Both the position numbers and the translations under genes were made by a program. From assembly GCF_006345805.1 (NCBI RefSeq), contig NW_021835038.1, forward strand, positions 1 through 64,000: a DNA stretch of 64,000 nt. The letters are read 5' to 3'. The stretch is from Octopus sinensis (Eukaryota). The notes below the pieces were generated by a model. The model was not told the DNA's origin. It saw only the letters and a program-made list of their open reading frames with translations, and ran no database searches. This document shows, piece by piece, positions 2,304 to 60,170 of this stretch; positions within the stretch are counted from its first letter, which is position 1; every line of letters starts with the position of its first letter.

Positions 2304-3007
2304 TATATTATATATATATATATACTATACATACATACAGACACACATACCCACATGCACATATACCATTCTTTATTCGTCAGTATAAGTGATTTGTATT
2401 TGTAATCGTTCTGGAATGGTATTTCGTGATGGCAGCTTGTCTTTAGACGCTTGCATTTATCAAGCATGAATTCCGTTCCGATGAATCTAGTTGTGTCGGG
2501 GGAAAGGGGCAGGATAAATAAAAATAAAAAAAAATGAAAACAATTTACACGACAATTGGCAGATTCAGCCAATGAGATCGAATTCTCAACACCAGAAAAT
2601 TATACAAGGCATCTGGAATAGAATAACCAATCATTAAAAAAAAGGAGAAAAGGAAAAAACGATTGAACTTGACGGTTAGTTGGTTCTTAAGAAATGGCGA
2701 AATGAGTTCTTAGTTTATTGCAATGAAAAATTCTTTATTATTTTTCTATTCTTTTCCTTCTGTTTCCTTTCTTTTTTTTCTTTTTTTTTTTTTTGTTAAA
2801 TGTGCTGAATTATGTTGGATAGCAGAAATGGTAGAAACGGAAGAGAAATTATTGGATATTCACATTAAGCTCCTTTAATGTTGTTGTATCTTGGGAGGGT
2901 CATGATGCCAACAATAAACACACGCATTGACCCTACACAAGATACAGCAACAACAACAACATCAGCAGCAACAACAACAACAACGACAACAACAACAACA
3001 AATAATA

Positions 3008-3039
<32 letters not shown>

Positions 3040-3158
3040 TAATAATAATTAATAATGATGATGATGATGATGATAATAATAATAATAATAAAATAATAAT
3101 AATAAAATAATAATAATGATGATGATGATGATGAAATAAAATAATAATAATAATAATA

Positions 3159-6000: not shown

Positions 6001-6152
6001 CATACATTATACGACAGGCTTCTTTCAGTTTTCCGTCTGCCAAATCCACTAACAAGGCTTTGGTCTGCCTGAGCTATAGTAGAAGACACTTGCCCAAGGT
6101 GCCACGCATTGGGACTGAACCCGGAACCATGTGGTTGGTAAGCAAGCTACTT
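5781..6152 (-). mobile_element. SINE family A, head slightly truncated
   Basis: Same consensus as 4731-5231 and 45201-45633. Confidence 0.9.
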
Positions 6153-21009: not shown

Positions 21010-21920
21010 TGATCTTGCGCGGCATATGTAGCGCGACATGTGTGGCAAGATAAGATATCCAATGACTAAATCTCAGAAAAAGGATATTTTTCTAGTATCG
21101 AAAGCATGTTGATGAAAATTCAGTGCAGATGGACAGGACATGTTCGAATGAGAAATGACCGCATTCGGAAAATGGTTCTGTAAGACCAACAAGTGGAGGG
21201 ATACCGCGACAAAGGAAGACCAGTTCTTAGGTATAAGGATAAGTTGAAGCAATCGTTAAAATCTCAACAGCTTAACATGACATCTTAGAAAATTCATTGC
21301 CTAGATTGACCTGCAATGGCGTAAAATGACTGACGATGCATCAAACCAATTTGAGTTGAAGAAAAAGAACAATAGAAGAACTATATCAACAGACGCAGGA
21401 GTGGCTGTGTGGTAAGTAGCTTGTTTACCAACCACATGGTTCCGGGTTCAGTTCCACTGCGTGGCACCTTGGGCAGGTGTCTTCTACTATAGCTTCGGGC
21501 CGACCAAAGCCCTGTGAGTGGATTTGGTAGACGGAACTGAAAGAAGCCCGTCGTATATATGTATATATATATATGAGTGTATGTGTGTCTGTGTTTGTCC
21601 CCCTAGCATTGCTTGACAACCGATGCTGGTGTGTTTATGTCCACGTTACTTAGCGGTTCGGCAAAAGAGACCGATAGAATAAGTACTGGGCTTACAAAAG
21701 AATAAGTCCCGGGATCGAATTGCTCGATTAAAGGCGGTGCTCCAGCATGGCCGCAGTCAAATGACTGAAACAAGTAAAAGAGTAAAGAGTAAAAGAGAGA
21801 CACATTTGCCCAATTCCAGGCTAAATCAAAATTATCAATGTCCCCATTGTGACTTCATAGCAAAATCCATTCCTGGATTGAAATCACATTCACGCAACCA
21901 TCGCAAACAGATGCAGCTCC
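21010..21920 (+). mobile_element. RTE-clade LINE 3' fragment with terminal C2H2 finger, interrupted by a SINE
   Basis: WQDKISN..IESMLMKIQCRWTGHVRMRNDRIRK..KGRPVLRYKDKLKQSLK; after the SINE, YQCPHCDFIAKSIPGLKSHSRNH. Confidence 0.75.
21392..21797 (+). mobile_element. SINE family A, full length
   Basis: gacgcaggagtggctgtgtggtaag...aaacaagtaaaagagtaaagag. Confidence 0.93.
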
Positions 21921-24763: not shown

Positions 24764-26932
24764 GAACAGAAAGGATGTAAACGTGGATCCTACGATTGTA
24801 AAGATCAACTACTCATCAATAAGATGATCTTAGAAGATTGTCACAAACGACACAAAAACTTATCAATAGCCTGGATAGACTATAAAAAGGCTTTTGATAG
24901 CCTACCACATAGCTGGATTAAGAAATGCCTAGAAATGTATAAGATAGCACCTACTCTGCGAAACTTTTTGCCTGTAAGTATGAGATCACGGAGAACCACA
25001 CTAACTTTGAACAGTGACAATGAATCTCTAAATGCTGGTGATGTAAACATTTCATGTGGCATTTTCCAGGGTGACTCACTATCACCACTCCTCTTCTGTT
25101 TAGCCTTAGTACCTCTCTCAAAACCGCTCAATGACGCGCAGTACGAATATAAAATGTTTGATAAAAATATAAATAATCTCATTTACATGGATGATTTAAA
25201 GCTCTTTGCAAAAAATGACCAACAACTCAAGGGCTTACTAGCGATTGTCAAACAATTCAGTGATGACATCAGAATGCAATTTGGCCTCGATAAATGTGCA
25301 AAAGCTACCTTTATCAAAGGAAAAATGACAGAAACATCTAACGTTAACCTTGACCAGTAGAATGTCATGAAAGAATTAGACCCAGCGGAGAACTACAAGT
25401 ATCTAAGGATAATTGAAGGGGACGGAATAAGGCATTCAGAGATGAAGGAAAGGATCAGGAGAGAATGTTATCGCAGAGTAAGAGCAATACTCAAGACAGA
25501 GCTGAATGCGAGAAACAGGATCGAAGCGATCAACGCATTAGCCATACCAGTCGTGACTTACAGTTTCAATATCGTTAACTGGTCAATTACTGAAATATGT
25601 AATCTTGACAGAAAAATACGAAAACTGTTGACAATGCATAGAATGCACCACCCTAAGGCAGATACAGAACGACTTTATCTGCCAAGAAACGAGGGAGGCC
25701 GTGGACTTTTACAACTGGCAATAACAATGAAGATTGCTACAATTGGCCTAGACACCTACCTGAAAAACTCTGAGGACTGGATGTTAAAACTTGTCTCAAA
25801 ACATGAAAACAAGAAAGCATCATACTCAGTAACAAAACAGGCAAAGGAATATCTAAGTGAATTCCGAATACAACAAATTTCGGAATTAGAGATAGACATA
25901 CAAGAAACAAGCACAGAAAAAGCTAAGCGCATGAAAACCCGTGCTAAAACTGCGGCCTTAGATATTCTGAATGATAAATGGCAAGAAAAACCTCTCTATG
26001 GCAAATACTCAAAGAGAGCGAATAATGCAGATATTGACAAAGCCCTGACCCATCAATGGTTAATGGCCTCTGGCTTAAAATCTGAAACAGAGGGATTTAT
26101 CATAGCAGCTCAAGATCAATGCCTACCAACAAGAAAATACCAGGCCAACATATTAAAGAGCGGCAGTAGCCCAACATGTCGTGTATGTCAGCAACAAAAT
26201 GAAACCATTGATCATGTTGTCTCCAAGTGAAGTCTTCTAGCGCCTACAGAGTATCTCAACAGGCATGATAGAGCTGCACAATATATTCACTGGGTAATCT
26301 GCAAAAACCTGGATTTGCCCCATGAAAAAAACTGGTGGGAACACAAACCACCCCCAGTGCTTGAAAATGACCACATCTCACTCCTCTGGAACTTCACCAT
26401 TCAAACTGCAGAAAGATAGATGCAAATAGGCCAGACATCATATCGAAAGACTTCAAACAAAGAACATGCCTCCTTATTGATATGACTGTCCCAATCGATA
26501 TAAACGTATCTGTAAAGACCTACCAAAAATTGAGCAAATATAAAGATCTTGAAATAGAAATCAGCAAAATGTGGAACCTGAAGACTAAAACAATACCTGT
26601 TGTCATAGGTGCCCTGGGAATGATAGCAAAAGGGGCTGATTGCTACCTAACTCAGATACCAAGAAACCCCAAAATGGCAGAAATTCAAAAGATAGTGCGC
26701 ATGGGAACTGCTCATATCCTACGCAAAATACTTTCTATGTAATCTCAAGGTTTAAAACAAACATAATTTTTTTTTAGACATCCACTAGTACAACACCAAA
26801 AACAAAAAAAAAACAAATATATGGCACACTAGGCATAACAACAACGTGAACTTCCAACCTGTTGTCTCTTGAGGTCTCTGGGTGAGACTTGGAGCCAACT
26901 TGTACAAATATAAAGCAAAAGTCAAACATAGG
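24764..26932 (+). mobile_element. R4/Dong-clade non-LTR retrotransposon, 5'-truncated (RT, CCHC finger, RLE endonuclease)
   Basis: [79 protein letters not shown]. Stops at 25358 and 26228, frameshift ~26408. (AAT)n on both sides. Confidence 0.95.
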
Positions 26933-26943
26933 ATAATAATAAT

Positions 26944-31828: not shown

Positions 31829-32370
31829 GCTGCTGCTGCTGCTGTTGTTGTTGTTGTTGTTGTTGTTGCTGTCGTCATCGTTGTTGTGTTGTTTAACCCG
31901 AGTTCAGCTTCGATAGAACATACAGAAGATCAAAGACGTTCCAACTGTGACCTCTCGTTTTTATCCTCCCTACTTTTTTTTTCTTGTTTTTTTTTTTCGG
32001 TGTTCAATAACGGTAATATGAAGGCTGTCTACATTATCAGATGTGTTCTTACTACTTCTTATAAAAACGGTAAGATCCGAATTTTAGGGAATTTCGGCTG
32101 CTATATTTAGCTGGTCAACTGACATCATAGAGGTTCCCTCATTGTCTTGTCTTGACTGGTGCAGAAAATGTTCAGTTTGTAATACTGCAAGTTCGTGGTT
32201 CGCGTGATGAGGGTAGACGTGGGGAGTTTCATAAGAATACAGTGTGTTGGTTTTATTTTGCCCTTGGCCAGCCCTGACCGGGTAGACTTATGATTGAAAA
32301 CAAATATTCCAATCATGACCACCACCACCACATCCACCAGAGTAACTTATATCTACAACTAAGAATAACC

Positions 32371-32968
32371 TATTTCTTTATTACTATACAAGGTGCTAAA
32401 CACAGAGGGGACAAGCAAGGACAGACACAGGTATTAAGTCGATTACATCGACCCCAGTGCGTAACTGGTACTTAATTTATCGACCCCGAAAGGATGAAAG
32501 GCAAAGTCGACCTCGGCGGAATTTGAACTCACAACGTAACGCAGACGAAATACCTATTTCTTTATTACCCACAAGGGGCTAAACATAGAGGGGACAAACA
32601 AGGACAGACACAGGTATTAAGTCGATTACATCGACCCCAGTGCGTAACTGGTACTTAATTTATCGACCCCGAAAGGATGAAAGGCAAAGTCGACCTCGGC
32701 GGAATTTGAACTCACAACGTAACGCAGACGAAATACCTATTTCTTTATTACCCACAAGGGGCCAAACACAGAGGGGACAAGCAAGGACAGACACAGGTAT
32801 TAAGTCAATTACATCGACCCCAGTGCGTAACTGGTACTTAATTTATCGACCCCGAAAGGATGAAAGGCAAAGTCGACCTCGGCGGAATTTGAACTCAGAA
32901 CGTAACGGTAGACGAAATACCGCTAAGCATTTCGTCCGGCGTGCTAACGTTTCTGCCAGCTCGCCGCC
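32371..32968 (-). mobile_element. Head-to-tail trimer of SINE family B
   Basis: Units 32371-32554, 32555-32737, 32738-32968. TSD ctaagaataacc at 32359-32370 and 32968-32979. Confidence 0.93.
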
Positions 32969-34964: not shown

Positions 34965-37623
34965 CTGTAATCCTTCGACTATCACCGGTGTTACGTTCCA
35001 AAACCCCTCGCGATAGGTGAAAATCCGCGAAGTAGAAACAGTACTGTATATTTTTATTTTTTAGGGTTAGGGTTTGTATATATTTATTTTACTATTTTTA
35101 TATACTTAAGCTTTTAGTAAACTCCCTCCCACACTCTTAGGAGTACACGTGTCTTCTTTTCTTTTGCGGGTGAGAAACATAGTGATAGGCGTTGCCTTTT
35201 CTTCTGTGTTAGGAGGTTTTTATAATCTTCCATGGCTCCGTCGATTGCATTTCCGAACTGCAAATCACGAATCATCTGGGGTTTCCATTTTTGCTAGAGT
35301 TGAGAAGCGTTCTAGTGATAGGCCGACGTCTTCTTCTTCCCCTGGATTCTCGTTGTTCTTCTTCGTCCTCACTTGCAGACTTCGATATCCCTGTCAGATC
35401 TTCATCCGTTAACGGATCTGAGTGGGCTGCGATCAAGTTATTAAAGTCCTTGGTAGTCATATTGGTGAAACCATCTCCTCCTAGCAATTTTTCCGGCTTC
35501 ACTGCCTTATGTATTGCAGAGTAGTAGATTTCGTCAGAAGAGAAATCCTTTATAGTTGTGGACCGCTTCTGGCCATAATTTCTTCCAACTGCCATTCAAA
35601 GTTTCGTTCTTCATCTCCTTTATGACCTGAATATTTTGGAGACATGTTGCAATGGAGTACCTACCCCAGTACTCCTTCAACGAGAATCTCTCATCTGAGT
35701 CCTTAGCCTCGACCAGGTGTCGCAGGAAGTTTCGCGTATAGAGTGTCTTAAAAGCACAAATAACGTCTTGATCCATGGGCTGGATCAGAGATGTGGTGTT
35801 CGGCGGTAAGAATTCGATTTGTACACCCTCATACCTCAGGTCAAGAGCGTGACCTTCAGCGTTGTCCATTAGGAGAAGCACTTTAAATTCCAGTCCTTTT
35901 TCGGCGAGATAAACTTTGACTTCGAGAATCAAGCACTGGTGAAACTAATCCGATGTCAGTGATTTTATTATCCATGCCTTCTGGTTGTGCATCTATCCAA
36001 TTCACTGGCAACAGGTTCTTAGTTTTGGTTTCGCGGGCCCTTGGGTTTCTGGACTTATAGATAAGTTCTGGCTTCATCATAAAGCCCACAGCATTTCCAC
36101 ACAATATAATTATGACGCGATCTTTGTACGCCTTAAATTGAGGGACTCTGGCCTCCTCTTTCATAATGGAAGTCTGCGATGGCATCCGTTTCCAAAAGAG
36201 ACCAGTCTATATCCATATTGAAAACTTGTTCACGCGAATCCTCGACGATGGTCTTGAATGTCTCGTTCACGTATTCCTCAGCGGCGGGTTTGTCAGCAGA
36301 GGCAGCTTCTCGATGCATGAACGTACTCTTAATGTTGAACCTCCTTTGGAATTTATCAAACCAGCCCTTGCTGGCATTAATTTCGGTTAGAATGGTGGGA
36401 GGTGCCGTAGATGGTCCTAGTTCACAGTCGTCTGGGTCGTCGTCACCGCCATCCGTAAACTTGCCGTACAGCTGCCTGGCCTTCTCAGAGATGGTGTTAA
36501 TATCGAGTGCAATGTTCTTCTTCTTGCAGTCACTGATCCAAAGAGTTAATGCAGACCACATCATTACGATATCCTTATTACGGGAAGTTACCACTCTATT
36601 CGCTGGCTTGTCAAAAGTCACTTTTGCCGTCGCCCTTATATATTTTTCGTCCTTCTTGATGTAGCGAACGTTAGATCCATTGACGTCGTAATGGCATCCT
36701 ACATTCGCATACCTTCTCTCTTCCTTAAGCATGTCGAGGAGTTTTACCTTCTCTGCTATAGGAAGCATCTTCCTCTGGCGCTTGAGTTCCCTGCCAGAAG
36801 CCTTTGAAAGTGCAGAACGTTTGGACGACATCGTAGAGCTTGAAATATATACACAATTTTATACACAAATGCAAAACAACACCATACACTCGCTTCCCGA
36901 GTTTCGTTTTCCTTACAGTATATGTGATTCTTTGTTTACTCATCTTCGGTACACTACACATTGTCTTTTAATATATACTAGCAGTATCGCCCGGCGTTGC
37001 TCAGGTTTGTAAGGGAAATAACTATAAAGCATTTTTAGAGAGTTATAGCCAAAAAATAGCAAAAAAATGGAAAAAAAATTATGGTAAATTTTTTTTGAGA
37101 GTTAAAAAAGGTCGAGTTGCGTCCCCTAGACAGTCTGTGGTTTGTGTTTCTGATTGTCGACCCCATGTCGAATTTATCGATTTTATTCAGAACTGGGGGA
37201 ACTTTTCAAAATTTTCGCTGCGTTAGTTTTGTATTATGACATTGGGCTATGTGTGTGTCAAGTTTCATCAGAATCGGTTGAAAGCCGTGGTCAGGGTGAG
37301 GGTACAACCAAACAGACACACAGAAACACACAGAGACAAACTGCCGTTTATATAGAGAGAGATATTAATTAATGTGGCATACAGTGCAGTACTGAACTGT
37401 ATTTTTAATTATTAATTTATTAAATTTTAGGTATGAAAATGCTTCTTTTACTACAGAAATAACTAAAATCTAAAAAATAATAATAATAAATAAATACCTA
37501 TCGACCGCAGAAACACGCGATGAACTGAGGAGTCCGCGATATAAATTTACATATATGAACCAGAAAAATCCACGATGTACTGAGAGTACGATAGGTGAAC
37601 CGCGATATGGCGAGTGGTTGCTG
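34965..37623 (-). mobile_element. Tigger/pogo DNA transposon with a frameshifted transposase (HTH-psq + CENP-B HTH + DDE)
   Basis: RKMLPIAEKVKLL, ASKGWFDKF, FNMD(ET)GLFWKRMP, KDRVIIILCGN, VLLLMDNAEGH, FLPPNTTSLIQPMDQ. Imperfect TIRs, TA at 34963-64 and 37624-25, inside one (TATG)n array. Confidence 0.92.
36978..37362 (-). mobile_element. Non-autonomous Helitron nested in the Tigger element
   Basis: Minus strand: A|TC start (37362), CTAG|T end (36978), subterminal hairpin cctgagcaacgccggg, no TSD. Confidence 0.85.
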
Positions 37624-39149: not shown

Positions 39150-39767
39150 ATCTTTTCTACCCTAGACACAAGACCCAAAATTTTGGGGGAGGGGACCGGT
39201 CGATTAGATCAACCCCAGTACGCAACTGGTACTTAATTTATCGATCTCAAAAGGATGAAAGGCAAAGTCGACCTCAGTGGAATTTAAACTCAGAACGTAG
39301 AGACAGATGAAATACCTATTACTTTACTACCCACAAGGGGCTAAACACAGAGGGAACAAACAAGTACAGACAAATGGATGAAGTCGATTATATCGACCCA
39401 GTGCGTAACTGGTACTTAATTTATCGATCTCGAAAGGATGAAAGGCAAAGTCGATCTCGGCGGAATTTGAACGCAGAACGTAAAGACAGACGAAATACCG
39501 CTAAGCATTTCGCCCGGCGTGCTAACGCTTCTACCAGCTCACCGCCTTTAATAATCTTTTCTACTATAAGCAGAAAGCCCGAAATTTTAGGGGAGGAGGC
39601 CAGTTGATTAAATCAACCCCAGTTCGCAACTGGTACTTAATTTATCGACCCCGAAAGTATTAAGGCAAAGTCGACCTCGACGGAATTTGAACTCAGAACG
39701 TAAAGACAGACGAAATACCGCTAAGCATTTCGCCTGGCGTTCTAACGTTTCTGCCAGCTCACCGCCT
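39150..39767 (-). mobile_element. Cluster of three SINE family B/B2 copies
   Basis: Dimer 39150-39548 (junction gaaatacc|tatt ~39315) plus a further copy 39555-39767. Confidence 0.88.
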
Positions 39768-40689: not shown

Positions 40690-41118
40690 ATAATAATCTT
40701 TTCTACTAAAGATACAGAGCCCATAATTTGGTTGGGTCAGAGCTAGTCGATTACATCTACCACAGTGTTTCACTGGTACTTAATTTATCGATCCCGAAAT
40801 TTGAACCCAGAACCTGAAGACAAACGAAATGCCGCAAATCATTTCTCCCGGCGTGTTAACGATTCTACCAGCTCGCCGCCTAATAAAAATAATAACAATC
40901 CTTTCTACAATAGGCAAAGGGCCTGAAATTTAGGGGCGGGGGGGGGGGCTAGTCGATTACATCGACTCTAGCATGCAACTGGTACTTATTTTCATAACCC
41001 TAAAACGATGGAAGGCAAAGTCGACCTCTGTGGAATTTGAACACAAACGTGAAGATGGACAAAATGCAGCTAAGCATTACACCTGGCTCGCTAAACGATT
41101 TTGACAGTTCACCACCTA
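40690..41118 (-). mobile_element. Two SINE family B2 copies (alternative 3' tail)
   Basis: Family-B head and body with tail ...atttcaggccc..tgcctattgtagaaaggatt. Confidence 0.8.
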
Positions 41119-41637
41119 AGTACCAGACAGTGGCTCTCATGGTTTCTGATCTTAAATGATTGGAAGTGTTATCATGTACATTTTGTCTTGGTTTTAAAAA
41201 AGAAGGGCTACAGCAATATTCTGCTCAATACCACAGATTTGCTTGTCAGTTGTTTGACCTTAACCAGTTGAGCATGTCCCTTAGTGGCTGACGATATGTG
41301 CATCTCTGATCACGAGCAGAAGTAGTGGGGGAGCATCATAGCAATGTGTTGAGAGGGATTCTTTGGGGTTTGAATAGTTCACCTCTGGAAACATGGGTGG
41401 TTCGTTCGACATCCTTAAACCTTTTGAGCGGGATGAGCTACTCGACCAGAAGGAAACTTTAACTGGGCCTCATCTGCGCTGTTTATGTTGATATAAGATC
41501 ATCCATGTCGTGCACATATGGTTGTGATGCATGTGCCTGGTGTACCCTTAACAGACGGGTAGTCATGATGCGTATATTGGGCTTCGTATATTTGTACTCC
41601 CAGTGTCACTTTGATGGCATGCACTGCTCTCTCACTC
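41119..41637 (+). mobile_element. Non-coding interspersed element 'D' (5'-clipped), ending in (TAA)n
   Basis: High identity to the reverse complement of 56196-56738. No recognisable ORF or pol III boxes. Confidence 0.85.
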
Positions 41638-41720
<83 letters not shown>

Positions 41721-41742
41721 CAACAATAATAATAATAATAAT

Positions 41743-44340
41743 TGGGCACAGAGCAGGAAGTATAAAATATTGAAAGAACGGGCCTGAAAGTGGTAATGGA
41801 GGAGCTGAAACAGCGCCTCATTTCAAAGAAAGCAAAGATGGTAAGATACGACCAAAGAATGAAGGGATACTAGCAGAACAGGTTATTCAGTGTAGATCAG
41901 AAGAGATTCTACAAAGCAATAAATGGAGGGTGTACCGATGAATAGTTGATACCAGATAATATTGAAAGTCAAAGGTTTTGGAGTGACATCTGGAGCAAAG
42001 ACAAGGAGCACAAGAAGGATGCTGAATGGTTGCAAGAACTGAAACAAACAGTAGTTTGTCCACAACAAGCAGAACTAGTCATTTCAGTTAGGGAAGTGAA
42101 GGAAATCAGCAAACAAAAAAAGGGCAACTAGAAGGCCCCGGGACCAGATGGAGTTCAAGGCTACTGGATCAAAAGATTTGGTGAATGTCATGCACGAATA
42201 GTTGCACAACTCAACACCTTGTTAAATGCCAACCAAGTAACACCAGAGTGGTTTACAAAGGATAGGACAGTGCTGTGCTTGAAAAACATCGAAAAAGGCA
42301 ATACGGTAGAAACTTACAGGCCGATATCCTGCTTGCCACTTATGCGGAAATTATTGACTGGAACAGTCGCAGAGTAAATGTACGGACATCTGGAAAAAAT
42401 GGAGCACTCCCACATGAGCAGAAAGGTTGCAAGCGTAAGTGCAGAGGTAACAAGGATCAACACCTGGTAGACAAAGCTGTACTTAGAGACTGCAAGAGGA
42501 GGAAAACTAACTTAGCCATGGCGTCGATTATCGTAAGGCGTACGATATGATCCCACATTCTTGAATTATGGAATTGCATTGCATCGAATGTTGAATGCTT
42601 GGAAAAAGTATGGCGCAGTAGAGGACGGAATTGACAGCATATGGAAGTTGTTTAGGGACAATAGAAATCAGGAGAGACATCTTCCCGGGGGACTGCCCTT
42701 CCCCACTGATCTTTGTACCACTAATACTGATTCTGAGGAAAGCAAAAGCTGGGTATGTATTCAAAAGCCGCCAACAAAAAGTCAACCACTTATTATTCAT
42801 GGATTACCTCAAACTTTATGATAAAGATGAATCCCGAATCAGTTCCCTCGTTGAGACAGTGTATACTTTCAGTGTTGATATCAGAATTGAGTTCGGACTG
42901 AAAAAGCGTGGTGTGTTAGTCTTGAAGAGCGGCAACAATAAATGTATGGACGGGCTAGCGATACAGTCGATGGGGGTTATGAAGCAGATAGAAGAGACAG
43001 GCTATAAGTGTTTGGGGATATTGGAAATGCATAAATTGATGGAGAAATAAATGATAGAAAAATATAAGGCGGAGTACTTGTGCAGACTGATCCTTAAGTC
43101 GAAATTAAACGGACTAAACAAGATTGAAGCTATTAAACACCTGGGCGGTTTCACTCCTTAGATATGTAGCAGGGGTAATCGCATGGACAGTAGACGAACT
43201 AAACAGCTTAGACAGAAAGAAGTTGCTGACTAGATATGGGATACTCCACCCCAAAAGTGACAGTCATATTGTATGTACCAAGAAAAAGAAGGGGAAGAGG
43301 AATGACTGAATGCAAACACAGCATTAGAGCAGAAGAAAACAACATAACATGGTATGTAAAAAAATGCCACAGAACCACTATTATTGGAAGTAAGAAGGTC
43401 AGGCTTGTGATGGATGGAAGATTGCAAAGATAAAGCACTGAGCAAGCACTTGAGAATAGATGAAACTGAAAATAGGTGGATAAATAAAAGAATGCGTAGA
43501 CAATTTCATAGGGATGTTGAACATATGACAGACATAGAAAAAAAGATGGCTATGAATGTGATTTAAAACCGGAAACGGAAGCTCTAATCTTTGCTGCCCA
43601 AGAGCAAGCATTAAGAAGCAATTATATCAAATTCATCGAAATCTGTGCTCCCCAAGAGCAAGCAATAAGAAGCAATTACATAAAATACAGAATAGACAAC
43701 ACACCAGAAAGTGATAAGTGCAGAATTTGTTGACAAAATGGTGAAACCATGTGGCATATTACCAGTCAATGTATGCCACTATCTCAAAAGGAACATAAGA
43801 GACGTCATGATAATATAGCAAGGCTTGTCCATTGGACACTTTGCAACAAGTATGGACTTGACAGAGCAAAATGATGATACGAACATAAATCCGAAGGCAT
43901 CATCGAAAATGATAATGCAAAGATCCTATGGGATTTTATGATTCGGTGCGACCATGAGATAGAAAATAGGAAACCAGACATAGTCTTAATTGAGAAAGAA
44001 AGCAAACTATGCTGGATTATATATATAGCGTACCCAGCTGACAACAAGGTATGCGATAAGGAAGAAAGAAAAGTTGAGTGATATGATAGGTTAGCTTGGA
44101 AAGTTAAGCAGTTGTGGTCGATGAAAAAGGTAGCAGTAGTACCAATAATTGTCGGAGCCCTGGGGACAGTGAGCAAAAATCTCGAGAAGTACGTGGAACA
44201 AATAGGGGTTGCAACAAGGGTGGAGCACTTGCAGAATACTCCGGATGGTGCTCGAAAAATAAGGAGTGTTACCTTAGTTTTCTGGTAGTGAAAAGCTGGC
44301 ACCGTAGTACATCTCTAATGTTAGAAGCTGTGCAAAGACG
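41743..44340 (+). mobile_element. Second R4/Dong lineage, 5'-truncated and degraded
   Basis: [84 protein letters not shown]. (AAT)n on both sides. Confidence 0.92.
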
Positions 44341-44429
44341 ATAATAATAATAATATAATAATAATAATAATATAATAATAATAATAATAATAAAATAATA
44401 ATAATAATAATAATAATAATATAATAATA

Positions 44430-44463
<34 letters not shown>

Positions 44464-50066: not shown

Positions 50067-50462
50067 GGTGCAGGAATGGCTGTGTGGTAAGTAGCTTGCT
50101 TACCAACCACATAATTCCGGGTTCAGTCCCACTGCGAGGCACCTTGGGCAAGAGTCTTCTACTGTAGCCTCAGGCTGACCAAAGCCTTGTGAGTGGATTT
50201 GGTAGACGGAAACTGAAAGAATCCCATCGTGTATATATATATATGGTTGTATGTATATGTTTGTGTGTCTGTGTTTGTCCCCCCACCATCACTTGACAAC
50301 TGAAGCTGGTGTGTTTACGTTCCTGTCACTTAGTGGTTCAGCAAAAGAGACCAATAGAATAAGTACTAGGCTTCCAAAGAATAAGTCCTGGGGTCGATTT
50401 GCTCAACTAAAGGCAGTGCTCCAGCATGGCCGCAGTCAAATGACTGAAACAAATAAAAGAAT
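50067..50462 (+). mobile_element. SINE family A, full length
   Basis: Consensus match. Confidence 0.92.
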
Positions 50463-55070: not shown

Positions 55071-55494
55071 CCCAGGCTGCACCATGGAGAAAACTACTCC
55101 ATCGATGGAACTTATCTATAGTACTTATTTTCCCGAACCGCTGAGTTACGAGTACATAAACAAACCAACATACACACCTACGCACACACATACACACCCA
55201 TATGTGTGGATTTTACACTGTTTCCGTCTACCATATTTACTCAAAGTGTTTTGCAGGAACGTCTTAACTGCATAGACATGCCTAGTATAATGATATTCTT
55301 GGATAACGAAACAGAGGCGCTTTTCTGTTTTGTTTTGTTTTTCAAGAAACCATATGATACGTCCTTGGTTTTAAGAATACAAACATTTCTGTTAAAAGAT
55401 TTCAGTAAATTTACCGATAAATTCTAACAAAGAATAATTATTATAATTATAATTATTATTATTATCATTATTATTATTTTTATTATTATTATTT

Positions 55495-56191
<697 letters not shown>

Positions 56192-56195
56192 CATT

Positions 56196-56755
56196 GAGTG
56201 AGAGAGCAGTGCATGCCATGAAAGTGACACGGGGGTAAAATATACAAAGCCCAGTATACCCATCATGACTTACCCGTCTGATAAGAGTACACCAGGCACA
56301 TGCATCACAACCATATTTACGAGACATGGTGATCTCATATCAAGATAACCAACGCATGACCTTGCAGGCGGGACTCAGTTAGAATTTTCTTCAAGTTGAC
56401 TAGCCCATCCCGATCAAACTGTTCTTAAATAAGGGTTGTTTAAGGATGTTGAAAGATACACCCATGCTCCCAGAGGTGAATTATTCAAACTTCAAAAAAT
56501 TCCTCTTATCACAAGAATATGATGCTCCCCCACCACTTCTGTTCATGATCAGAGATGCACATATCGTCAGCCACTAAGGGGCATGCTCAACTGGTTACGG
56601 TCAAACAACTGACAAGCAAATCTGTGGTATTGAGCAGAATATTTGCTGTAGCCCATCTTTTATACCAAGACAAAACAATGTACATGATAACACTTCCAAT
56701 CAGTTAAGATCAGAAGACATGAGAGCCACTGCCTGGTACTGCATCAGGGCATTTA
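56196..56755 (-). mobile_element. Element 'D', full length (~560 bp), in (TAA)n
   Basis: Minus start taaatgccctgatgcagtacc, end ctctctcactc. (ATT)n on both flanks. Confidence 0.88.
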
Positions 56756-56764
56756 TTATTATTA

Positions 56765-56816
<52 letters not shown>

Positions 56817-57347
56817 CATTTTTTTTTTTTGCCATTCGAAAATTCTCAGGCAATACTCAGTTGAAATATACCGATCATGTCGGAATGAACTGTATGCTCA
56901 GAAAAGGGATTGTTAAACACTTGACGTAGTGTCACAGCAATCAATAATTTTGTTTCTTAGTGGAAAAATTCCTTTGCGGGAAAAGCTGAATAATCATAGA
57001 AATACAACATTCGGTTGATTGACAAAAATAGATAACATTAAAAGTTACACATTTACAGCTTCGTTCTGTTCAATAAACTCAAATAAACTCGTATTCAGAT
57101 GTTCGACTTATGAACAGTTTTTTTTTTTTGTTTTTTTTTAATCATATTTTATGGGAAAGAAGCATTAAAAATCAGGTAAACTACGAATAAAAATGATAAA
57201 TTTGTCGAAAATCTTACTTGAAACTTCTCTTCTTTTTTTTACTGATACTTTTATCATTAAAGTCGGGGAAAATGAAACAATAAAATAAAGGTGTGCGCGG
57301 TGTATATTATATATATATATATATATTATATATATGTGTGTTGTGTG

Positions 57348-58496: not shown

Positions 58497-58808
58497 CTTC
58501 AAAATACAATGACCTGGAAATAGAAGTAACTCGAATGTGGAATCTAAAAACAGAAACAATTCCTATCATAGTAGGCGCATTAGGTATGATAAAAAAATAT
58601 TCAGACAAATACATAACAAAAACACCAGGACTTACAAATATATACAACATACAGAAAATTGGACTACTAGGCACTGCACACATCCTACACAAAACACTTT
58701 CAATGCAGTAACCATCAGAGCATCACAGCAAACCACAGCACATATTCAAGGCACACAGAGCTGCGCTCGGTAGTGAAGTGAAAGCACGATATAAAAATAA
58801 AACTATTG
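58497..58808 (+). mobile_element. R4/Dong 3' end (another lineage) in (TAA)n
   Basis: SKYNDLEIEVTRMWNLKTETIPIIVGALGMIKK...IQKIGLLGTAHILHKTLSMQ*. Confidence 0.9.
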
Positions 58809-58899: not shown

Positions 58900-60170
58900 C
58901 TGACTGCGGGGATAATGGAGCAAACATGGATGAGAAAAGGAAAGACCGTGCTGATATCGAAAAACAATGAAAGGGAGGTACAGTCAATTGTTATAGACCT
59001 AATATGTGCTGACTGTTACTCTGGAAATTATTAATTAACCTCAAAGCAGATGAAGTGCATAGCTATGTAGAGAAGGAGAATTTATTGCCAGGGGAGCAAA
59101 AAGAATGCATAAAGAAGTCAAGGGAAAATGCTGATCTGATGCATAATGATAGTAGGACACTAAATGTGATACGAATAAGAAGCAAAAAAATATAGCTATT
59201 GGACAGATAGACTTCAAGAAGTTTATGACGATGTTCTACACTGCTGGCTCATGGAATGTCTGGGGACACTCAAAGTCAATGAGAAGATAAACTGTGTTTT
59301 TTTTTAGAAATAAGAAACAATTAGAGCAATGGAAGTAAAACAAATGTGAATCATTAGGAAATGTGAAAATACAAAGGGGGATACTCCAGGGAGACTCACT
59401 CTCTCCTTTACTTTTCATCATTGCATTAATCCCTTTGATAAAGATATTGAGAAAATACCGGCCTTCCCTATGAATTTGTCCAAACTAGGGTGAAAATTAA
59501 TCACCTACGATATATGGATGACCTCAAACTGTATACAAAAAAAAAAAAGGAATAGGCCTGTATTCTCTATTATAAATAGTAAAATTATTTAGCAAGGATA
59601 TTGGGATGCAGTTTGAAGTAAATAAGCGTACAGATTTAACTATGGAGAAACATCGAAGGGTTACATTTGACAGAATAAAATTACAAGGCGGTGAACTGGA
59701 AGAAACGTTAGCACGCCGGGCGAAATGCTTAGCAGTATCTCGTCTGCCGCTGCATTCTGAGTTCAAATTCCGCCGAGGTCGACTTTGCCTTTCATCCTTT
59801 CGGGGTCGATAAATTAAGTACCAGTTACGCACTGGGGTCGATGTAATCGACTTAATCCGTTTGTCTGTCCTTGTTTGTCCCCTCTGTGTTTAGCCCCTTG
59901 TGGGCAATAAAGAAATAAGCATAAAATTACAAGATGATATCGTTAGGTCGGTGAGAAATAATGAGGGATACAAGTACAGGTACGATTAGATAATGAAAAG
60001 AGAAATTGTCTCCAAAGAGAAGGGTTAGGAGAGATTCGAAACAAAACTATCTCTGCGAATACGAAATACGATCTACACTTGGACATCTTAAAGAGGGTCC
60101 TTTCTTGCACTGGAAATAAGAAAAAAAAATGCAGATTATGTCCCACAGAGGCCATTCATATGTTAGTAAG
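58900..60170 (+). mobile_element. Old R4-clade RT fragment interrupted by a SINE
   Basis: [38 protein letters not shown]. Confidence 0.8.
59688..59920 (+). mobile_element. SINE family B, full length
   Basis: 13-bp TSD ataaaattacaag at 59675-59687 and 59921-59933. Confidence 0.95.

Follow-up and report, generated by a model that had tools for sequence, protein, structure and literature searches.

The window analysed here, 64,000 nucleotides of Octopus sinensis DNA (contig NW_021835038.1, positions 1 to 64,000), contains a short repeated element, here called D, that lies among fragments of long interspersed nuclear elements (LINEs) and microsatellites of the TAA type. A blastn search located exactly two copies of D in the window, at 56196-56755 on the minus strand and at 41119-41637 on the plus strand, which confirms the two copies reported in a first-pass annotation made from the sequence letters. 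The copies are 83.5% identical with gaps (blastn) and 86% identical over aligned columns. Throughout, 5' and 3' are given as read on the sense strand of D. The two copies and the repeats that adjoin them are the following:

56196..56752, minus strand: D56, the reference copy of D, about 557 bp, running from 5' ATGCCCTGATGC to GCTCTCTCACTC 3'
56114..56195, minus strand: (AAT)27, directly 3' of D56 on the sense strand; target microsatellite or tail
56753..56820, minus strand: (TAA)22, directly 5' of D56 on the sense strand
41119..41637, plus strand: D41, the second copy of D, without the first 12-15 nt; its 5' end lies against the 3' end of a short interspersed nuclear element (SINE)
41638..41742, plus strand: (AAT)35, directly 3' of D41, followed by the LINE fragment R4B

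Both copies have the same 3' terminus, CTCTCTCACTC, and then (AAT)n, and in each the terminal stretch ...GCTCTCTCACTC leads into the repeat on the sense strand, just as the first-pass annotation had it. The 3' limit given there for D56 stands, but its 5' end is better set at 56752 (ATGCC...) than at 56755, because the last three nucleotides, 56753-56755, are already repeat. D56 is the full copy, with (AAT)27 downstream and (TAA)22 upstream, as had been described. D41 begins about 12-15 nt inside the D56 sequence, and on its 5' side the SINE 3' end adjoins it with no TAA array. The window holds 17 TAA-type arrays, which together make up about 3.2 kb; since this is only 4.9% of its length, a unit bounded by TAA repeats is no chance arrangement. 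No open reading frame (ORF) is conserved between D56 and D41.

The SINE next to D41, possibly of a cephalopod type, is abundant in the window, where it forms head-to-tail copies with short TAA-like spacers at 39150-39767, 40697-41118 and 32368-32921; one of these stretches is a 183-bp unit repeated three times. The insertion point of D41 is exactly the 3' end of one such copy. TAA arrays may have been seeded by SINE tails. At the start of the window, a CT-rich low-complexity run of TCTCTCACTC-like units (44-127) resembles the last 11 nt of D. No D sequence adjoins this run, and the likeness is therefore probably coincidence.

Relatives of D outside the window were sought in 80 fetched metagenome loci encoding Dong-like C-termini (84 loci, L001-L084, overall), Dong being the R4-clade LINE whose target is TAA microsatellites (PMC3812793). 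The sample of D now stands at four copies from three sources: D56 and D41 from the window, and one copy each from the loci L064 and L055. The first of these loci, a JGI metagenome contig of 2133 bp, was picked up when D was compared with the fetched loci by sensitive blastn. It consists, in order, of a Dong-like ORF with its 3' untranslated region (UTR), (ATA)n, a D homologue of about 630 bp at about 1342-1972 (L064D), and (ATA)5. An nhmmer profile made of the window copies only recovers L064D with E values of 1.5e-18 and 2.2e-13. The second locus, which holds a more distant homologue, was found by a model, R2, that represents the 3' 135 nt of D56, D41 and L064D; it matches L055 at 2903-3023 (28.6 bits, E about 7e-6). 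There, a Dong 3'UTR is followed by (AAT)n, a 537-bp element at 2487-3023 (L055D), (ATA)5 and a 5'-truncated reverse transcriptase (RT). A profile without L055 gives two collinear, correctly spaced nhmmer matches in L055D (E 1e-3 and 8e-3). Both L064D and L055D thus lie directly downstream of a Dong-like LINE, in the same orientation as that LINE and flanked by TAA repeats. The truncated RT that follows L055D and its (ATA)5 occupies 3040-3127 and starts near a KAYDMVPH motif, so nested arrays of TAA-targeted elements occur in the source organism of L055 too. Six-frame translations of D56 and L064D were also compared with a collection of 5.8 billion proteins, with the aim of finding spurious gene calls on copies of D, and gave no match; exact-pattern scans for conserved D blocks in metagenome, viral and prokaryote contigs returned only two chance 23-mers (L085 and L086).

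Right after the repeat, L055D starts with ATGCCTGGG and D56 with ATGCCCTGA, and the ATGCC that begins both argues for a discrete unit and not for random 5' truncation. Taking the start of D56 as zero, the 5' end lies at 0 in L055D, at +12-15 nt in D41 and at about -165 nt in L064D, four copies being too few to fix a common 5' end. In L064D, the position that corresponds to the start of D56 lies inside the element, after about 165 nt of extra sequence. All four copies have (TAA)n at their 3' end on the sense strand, the run being as short as 5 units in L064D and L055D. Three of the four have it at their 5' end as well, the fourth being D41 with its SINE neighbour. A further locus, L057, carries the same Dong as L055 (the C-terminus is 100% identical) with no D after its repeat; D in L055 is therefore a separate insertion.

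D is also non-coding, as first proposed. The observation that the first-pass annotation had named as telling against a separate element was a 5' extension of the copies into an ORF, and none of the four copies, from three sources, extends in this way. Likewise, a tblastn search with 120 Dong-like proteins found no Dong coding remnant in any of the four; it returned only noise, with a best E of 0.015 in a tiny database.

The LINE fragments around D in the window were mapped by tblastn with 120 relatives of the window RT. They are listed here with the matches of a covariance model, R1, of the Dong 3'UTR hairpin, which is described further below:

24764..26933, plus strand: R4A, 5'-truncated Dong-like LINE with RT, CCHC motif, restriction-like endonuclease (RLE) and a 193-nt 3'UTR; TAA repeats on both sides; R1 match at 26865-26897
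41743..44340, plus strand: R4B, degraded Dong-like LINE, RT to RLE, with many frameshifts; directly downstream of the D41 tail
from 44644: R4C, LINE fragment (tblastn)
55494..55750, minus strand: R4E1, twin of R4E2; R1 match at 55527-55559
55857..56113, minus strand: R4E2, 5'-truncated Dong-like 3' end consisting of the last 26 amino acids and the 3'UTR; R1 match at 55891-55923, E 2e-4
58497-58790: R4D, LINE fragment (tblastn); TAA-type arrays on both sides
about 58992-59890, plus strand: unnamed RT fragment (tblastn)

Every named LINE fragment is followed by TAA-type repeats on its sense strand (after R4B, for example, comes (ATA)n at 44341-44463), and R4A, R4D, R4E1 and R4E2 have such arrays on both sides. 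The RLE (Dong/R4-like) LINE fragments of the window all lie in TAA arrays in one orientation, and D is oriented as they are. D56, R4E1 and R4E2 stand in one array, all on the minus strand, with R4E2 just downstream of D56 in the same orientation. The region 55437-56195 consists of a 363-bp unit (an ATT repeat joined to 258 bp from a Dong 3' end) present twice in tandem with 96% identity; R4E1 and R4E2 arose by local duplication and not by two separate insertions. The best-preserved possible source of enzyme in the window is R4A, which matches RVT_1 with E 2e-20, carries CRVC...H and RPDI...IDM...K motifs (CCHC and endonuclease) and encodes a protein that aligns with solved R2 proteins from the RT through the RLE (E 6e-20). 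Its closest relative, P0001 (64% identity), is set between (ATA)n runs, with repeats on both sides of the locus (L001). Among the 72 Dong loci that reach the stop codon, 38 have a TAA-type repeat downstream of the stop. No Dong proteins were found in viral contigs.

D appears to have RNA structure of its own at both ends. In the predicted fold of its 3' 135 nt, a long hairpin (about 26 bp) stands beside a short one, and four pairs are kept through double-sided changes. The predicted helices are:

56242..56305, minus strand: long 3' hairpin, about 26 bp including GCCUGGUGUACUC / GGGUAUACUGGGC; conserved, with compensatory changes in L064D
56213..56230, minus strand: short 3' hairpin, GUGUCA-CUUUCA-UGGCAU, 17 nt from the 3' end; a U-A pair becomes C-G in L064D
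56693..56716, minus strand: 5' hairpin, CUUCUGAUC-UUAAC-UGAUUGGAAG; conserved, with compensatory changes in L064D and L055D

Comparison of three lineages supports these conserved 5' and 3' helices as structures, short of proof. The folding energy of D as a whole is unremarkable (z = -1.6).

The Dong LINEs carry a different hairpin. In Dong-like LINEs from many sources the 3'UTR contains, 35-60 nt before the repeat, a motif in which CCYTAGG and CYCGG enclose a variable 4-bp stem with a YGGNY loop; conserved GG and CY flanks lengthen the stem to 6 modelled pairs, and an outer stem often encloses the whole. Over 22 sequences, which were picked by eye so that the choice favours structure, 95.5% of the cells pair, and there are 37 double-sided changes versus 11.4 in shuffles. 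Model R1, built from this hairpin without window sequences, matches R4A (26865-26897, plus strand), R4E2 and R4E1 in the window with E values of 2e-4 to 1e-3. In the 84 loci it matches 56 sites, all on the sense strand, nearly all just past the ORF and many outside the training set. The R4 UTR hairpins are therefore real. The modelled Dong 3'UTR hairpin is a candidate for the site at which the reverse transcriptase binds. Model R1 also has weak matches (E 1-2) in three copies of another repeat, at 6090-6129 (plus strand), 21437-21476 (minus strand) and 50112-50151 (minus strand), which run through TTGCCCAAGGT...ACCCGGAA; that repeat is probably part of a tRNA-like SINE, and the resemblance is probably due to chance.

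In D itself, model R1 has no match at E<=10 in D56 and D41 and none at E<=1 in L064D and L055D. This bears on a small hairpin near the 3' end of D, tatac-TGGGCTT-gtata, which the first-pass annotation had likened to the hairpins of the R4 UTRs (56240..56259, minus strand; GTATAC-TGGGCTTT-GTATAT). The letters are present, with the 5' arm reading TATAT instead of TATAC in D41, but neither the structure nor the link to the R4 UTRs held up: model R1 finds R4A and the R4E fragments and not D. Most bases of the small hairpin lie within the 3' strand of the long hairpin described above. Neither the minimum-energy fold of D56 nor the consensus fold contains the small hairpin, it shows no conservation in L064D or L055D, and a perfect 5-bp hairpin turns up within the last 100 nt in 29% of shuffles. 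As a structure it is not supported, being no better than chance.

No RNA polymerase III (pol III) head of the tRNA, 5S or 7SL kind was detected in D with ARAGORN, nor with Rfam even at E<=10, and the A/B-box-like matches in D occur at shuffle level and are not conserved. These results bear out the original statement that D has no pol III boxes and no tRNA head. Rfam searches of the window, D and L064 were negative for tRNA, 5S, 7SL, snRNA and ribozymes. A 5S-like origin of two D blocks was considered and dropped, as the Rfam 5S model has no match at E<=10. The term "SINE-like", under which D was first described, is a loose label for something about 555 bp long with no pol III features.

With regard to a possible partner, the Dongs upstream of L055D and L064D form one sublineage: their ORFs share 65-69% identity, against only about 45% with R4A or P0001. 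Four loci of this sublineage have at least 600 nt downstream, and in 2 of these a D comes after the LINE; among the roughly 11 other Dong loci with that much downstream sequence there is none, a suggestive difference (p about 0.06). R4B, which adjoins D41, is 40-42% identical to the sublineage versus 35% to P0001. On the other hand, the search for an autonomous R4 that shares the 3' end of D, which the first-pass annotation had proposed, found none. The 3' end of D has no similarity to the 5 window R4 UTRs. Model R2, run over the 84 loci, detects a D-like 3' domain in 0 of the 72 Dong loci that reach the C-terminus, and blastn was also negative. The usual mark of a LINE partner is therefore missing, and the true parent of D may lie outside the sampled Dongs. 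Two other relationships to the neighbouring LINEs were rejected. D is not the 5' leader of the downstream LINE, as the element after D is different each time and is truncated at different points. Nor is it a second 3' module of the upstream LINE, given that D56 and D41 have no Dong upstream and that the Dong of L057 has no D.

On balance, we consider it probable that D is a family of discrete, non-coding, non-autonomous retroposons of about 540-630 bp, specific for TAA and probably copied by Dong-like LINEs. The evidence is fairly strong for a discrete, non-coding family of retroposons with TAA microsatellites as its specific site, whereas copying by the Dong-like RLE LINEs is the most economical inference from their shared target, orientation and neighbourhood. 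D RNA would most likely come from upstream read-through across the TAA array, and would end in D's own conserved fold with UAA repeats after it. The enzyme of a Dong/R4-clade LINE, a reverse transcriptase of the RLE type, would nick a TAA array and copy the D RNA by target-primed reverse transcription. Once the cDNA extended as far as the D 5' end, or into the upstream repeat, it could join the TAA target by homology, which would produce a unit with TAA repeats on both sides. We infer both this mode of transcription and a recognition of the 3' end that does not depend on the Dong hairpin.

Several points weigh against this interpretation. The lineages do not share a uniform 5' end, since L064D is about 165 nt longer on that side. 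The sample is limited to four copies, with the source genome outside the search, and L064 and L055 are short-read metagenome contigs in which misjoining at repeats is possible. The searches gave no promoter, ribozyme or transcript evidence for D, and no sampled Dong 3'UTR resembles its 3' end, whether by model R1, by model R2 over the 84 loci or by blastn.

Another potential explanation, which we regard as unlikely, is that D descends by internal deletion from an unsampled Dong family and has kept the parent's 5' leader, with a self-cleaving ribozyme, and 3'UTR, in the manner of the short internally deleted elements (SIDEs) of R2. The structured and conserved 5' and 3' ends of D, together with its sharp 5' junction with the repeat, would fit such an origin. 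In addition, Dong of B. mori and R4 of Ascaris have 5' ribozymes of the hepatitis delta virus (HDV) type that cut exactly at the TAA/element junction (PMC3774820), and R2 SIDEs, as far as that source recounts them, are built likewise. A ribozyme was therefore sought in D. Rfam recognises none in D; the relaxed HDV descriptor has a match at the 5' end of D56 that 9 of 40 shuffles scored as high, and no match in L064D. However, Rfam also finds no ribozyme in the full-length Dong relatives L082 and L083, and a strict double-pseudoknot HDV descriptor, applied only to three full-length Dong 5' ends (L082-L084), has no match. As these full-length 5' ends are negative too, there is no positive control and the ribozyme searches carry little weight. 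A further point against a deleted Dong is that the 5' end of D is unlike the 5' leader conserved in those three relatives. The leader, CGTCGCGYGG...GCGTCCC, is found at L082 1-70, L083 1-70 and L084 3034-3105, and is followed by a covarying hairpin (CCTCAAG/CTTGAGG versus CCTCAGG/CCTGAGG) and then by TCGAAAA. Neither Rfam nor the HDV descriptor recognises this sequence, which could serve as a ribozyme at the 5' end or as a structured leader.

It is also rather improbable, in our view, that D is no element in its own right but the long 3'UTR of some autonomous Dong/R4 family absent from the window, its copies being 5'-truncated LINE fragments. The window is rich in Dong fragments of that sort, truncated at the 5' end and with TAA on both sides (R4A, R4D, R4E1 and R4E2), and the three D lineages do differ in their 5' ends, as set out above. 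However, this would imply a UTR of at least 560-725 nt, compared with 70-195 nt in the window R4 copies and a distance of 66-270 nt from stop to TAA repeat in 37 of 38 relatives, the exception being 1148 nt. It is further weakened by the 5' terminus common to two distant lineages, by the absence of coding remnants in all four copies and by the D-like 3' domain found in 0 of 72 Dong loci; moreover, D is without the 3'UTR hairpin that marks Dong. Finally, it is very unlikely that D was copied by a non-RLE LINE that makes its own (TAA)n tails in the fashion of I-type elements, the upstream TAA being tails of neighbours: some LINEs do terminate in TAA repeats, the 3' run is only 5 units in L064D and L055D, and D41 has no TAA array on its 5' side, but TAA repeats stand directly at the 5' end in three of four copies, D41 lies against the end of a SINE just upstream of which another SINE copy has a short TAA-like tail, all D copies share arrays and one orientation with Dong fragments, and no such LINE was seen in the window.

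Among known systems, the nearest to a retroposon of this kind are the SIDEs, which derive from Drosophila R2 by internal deletion (Eickbush and Eickbush 2012, via PMC3774820). Like D, they are short and non-coding, use the target and orientation of the LINE and have no pol III head; they are parasites of a site-specific RLE LINE, as D probably is. They differ in that they keep the 5' ribozyme and a clear 3'UTR identity of their parent, whereas D shows neither with any sampled Dong. D is also conserved between sources that are very distant and is not a recent deletion product. Dong itself, a TAA-specific RLE LINE of the R4 clade present in B. mori, A. gambiae and B. glabrata (PMC3812793, PMC3774820), has the target (TAA)n and the same orientation to the repeat as D, which stands in tandem arrays with Dong fragments. 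D differs from Dong in lacking an ORF, any resemblance to Dong proteins and, by model R1, the hairpin of the Dong 3'UTR. Classical SINEs resemble D in being non-autonomous, in using target-primed reverse transcription (which D would share under our interpretation), in having 5'-truncated copies and in an internal domain that is conserved across taxa. They have, however, a tRNA, 5S or 7SL head and a 3' end shared with a LINE, whereas D, at about 555 bp, has no head, no conserved A/B boxes and no shared end that we could find.

A more far-reaching and distinctly tentative possibility is that D is an old, structured, non-coding retroposon family, present in several host taxa, that lives in TAA microsatellites on Dong-type LINEs without the Dong 3'UTR hairpin. 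If this were true, the Dong enzyme would have to accept another RNA fold, unrelated to the first, unless a UAA tail annealed to the nicked TAA target suffices for priming. D would then also be the first parasite to be described for an RLE LINE that is specific to microsatellites; no description of a non-autonomous Dong partner of this kind was found in the literature searched, Repbase and Dfam being outside that search. Site-specific RLE LINEs such as R2, R4 and Dong serve as models of target-primed reverse transcription and are in development as gene-insertion tools, and R2 SIDEs, as known parasites, reveal the parts of the RNA that the enzyme needs. In the same way, a Dong parasite that has the target and not the 3'UTR hairpin would show what the TAA-targeting enzyme recognises and how freely it can be given other RNAs. 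It would also help to explain the nested arrays of elements in the TAA microsatellites of this genome.

Elsewhere in the window, the minus strand at 35275-36858 carries remnants of a pogo/Tigger-like transposase, spread over several frames, with a Tc5 helix-turn-helix domain recognised at E 3e-9.
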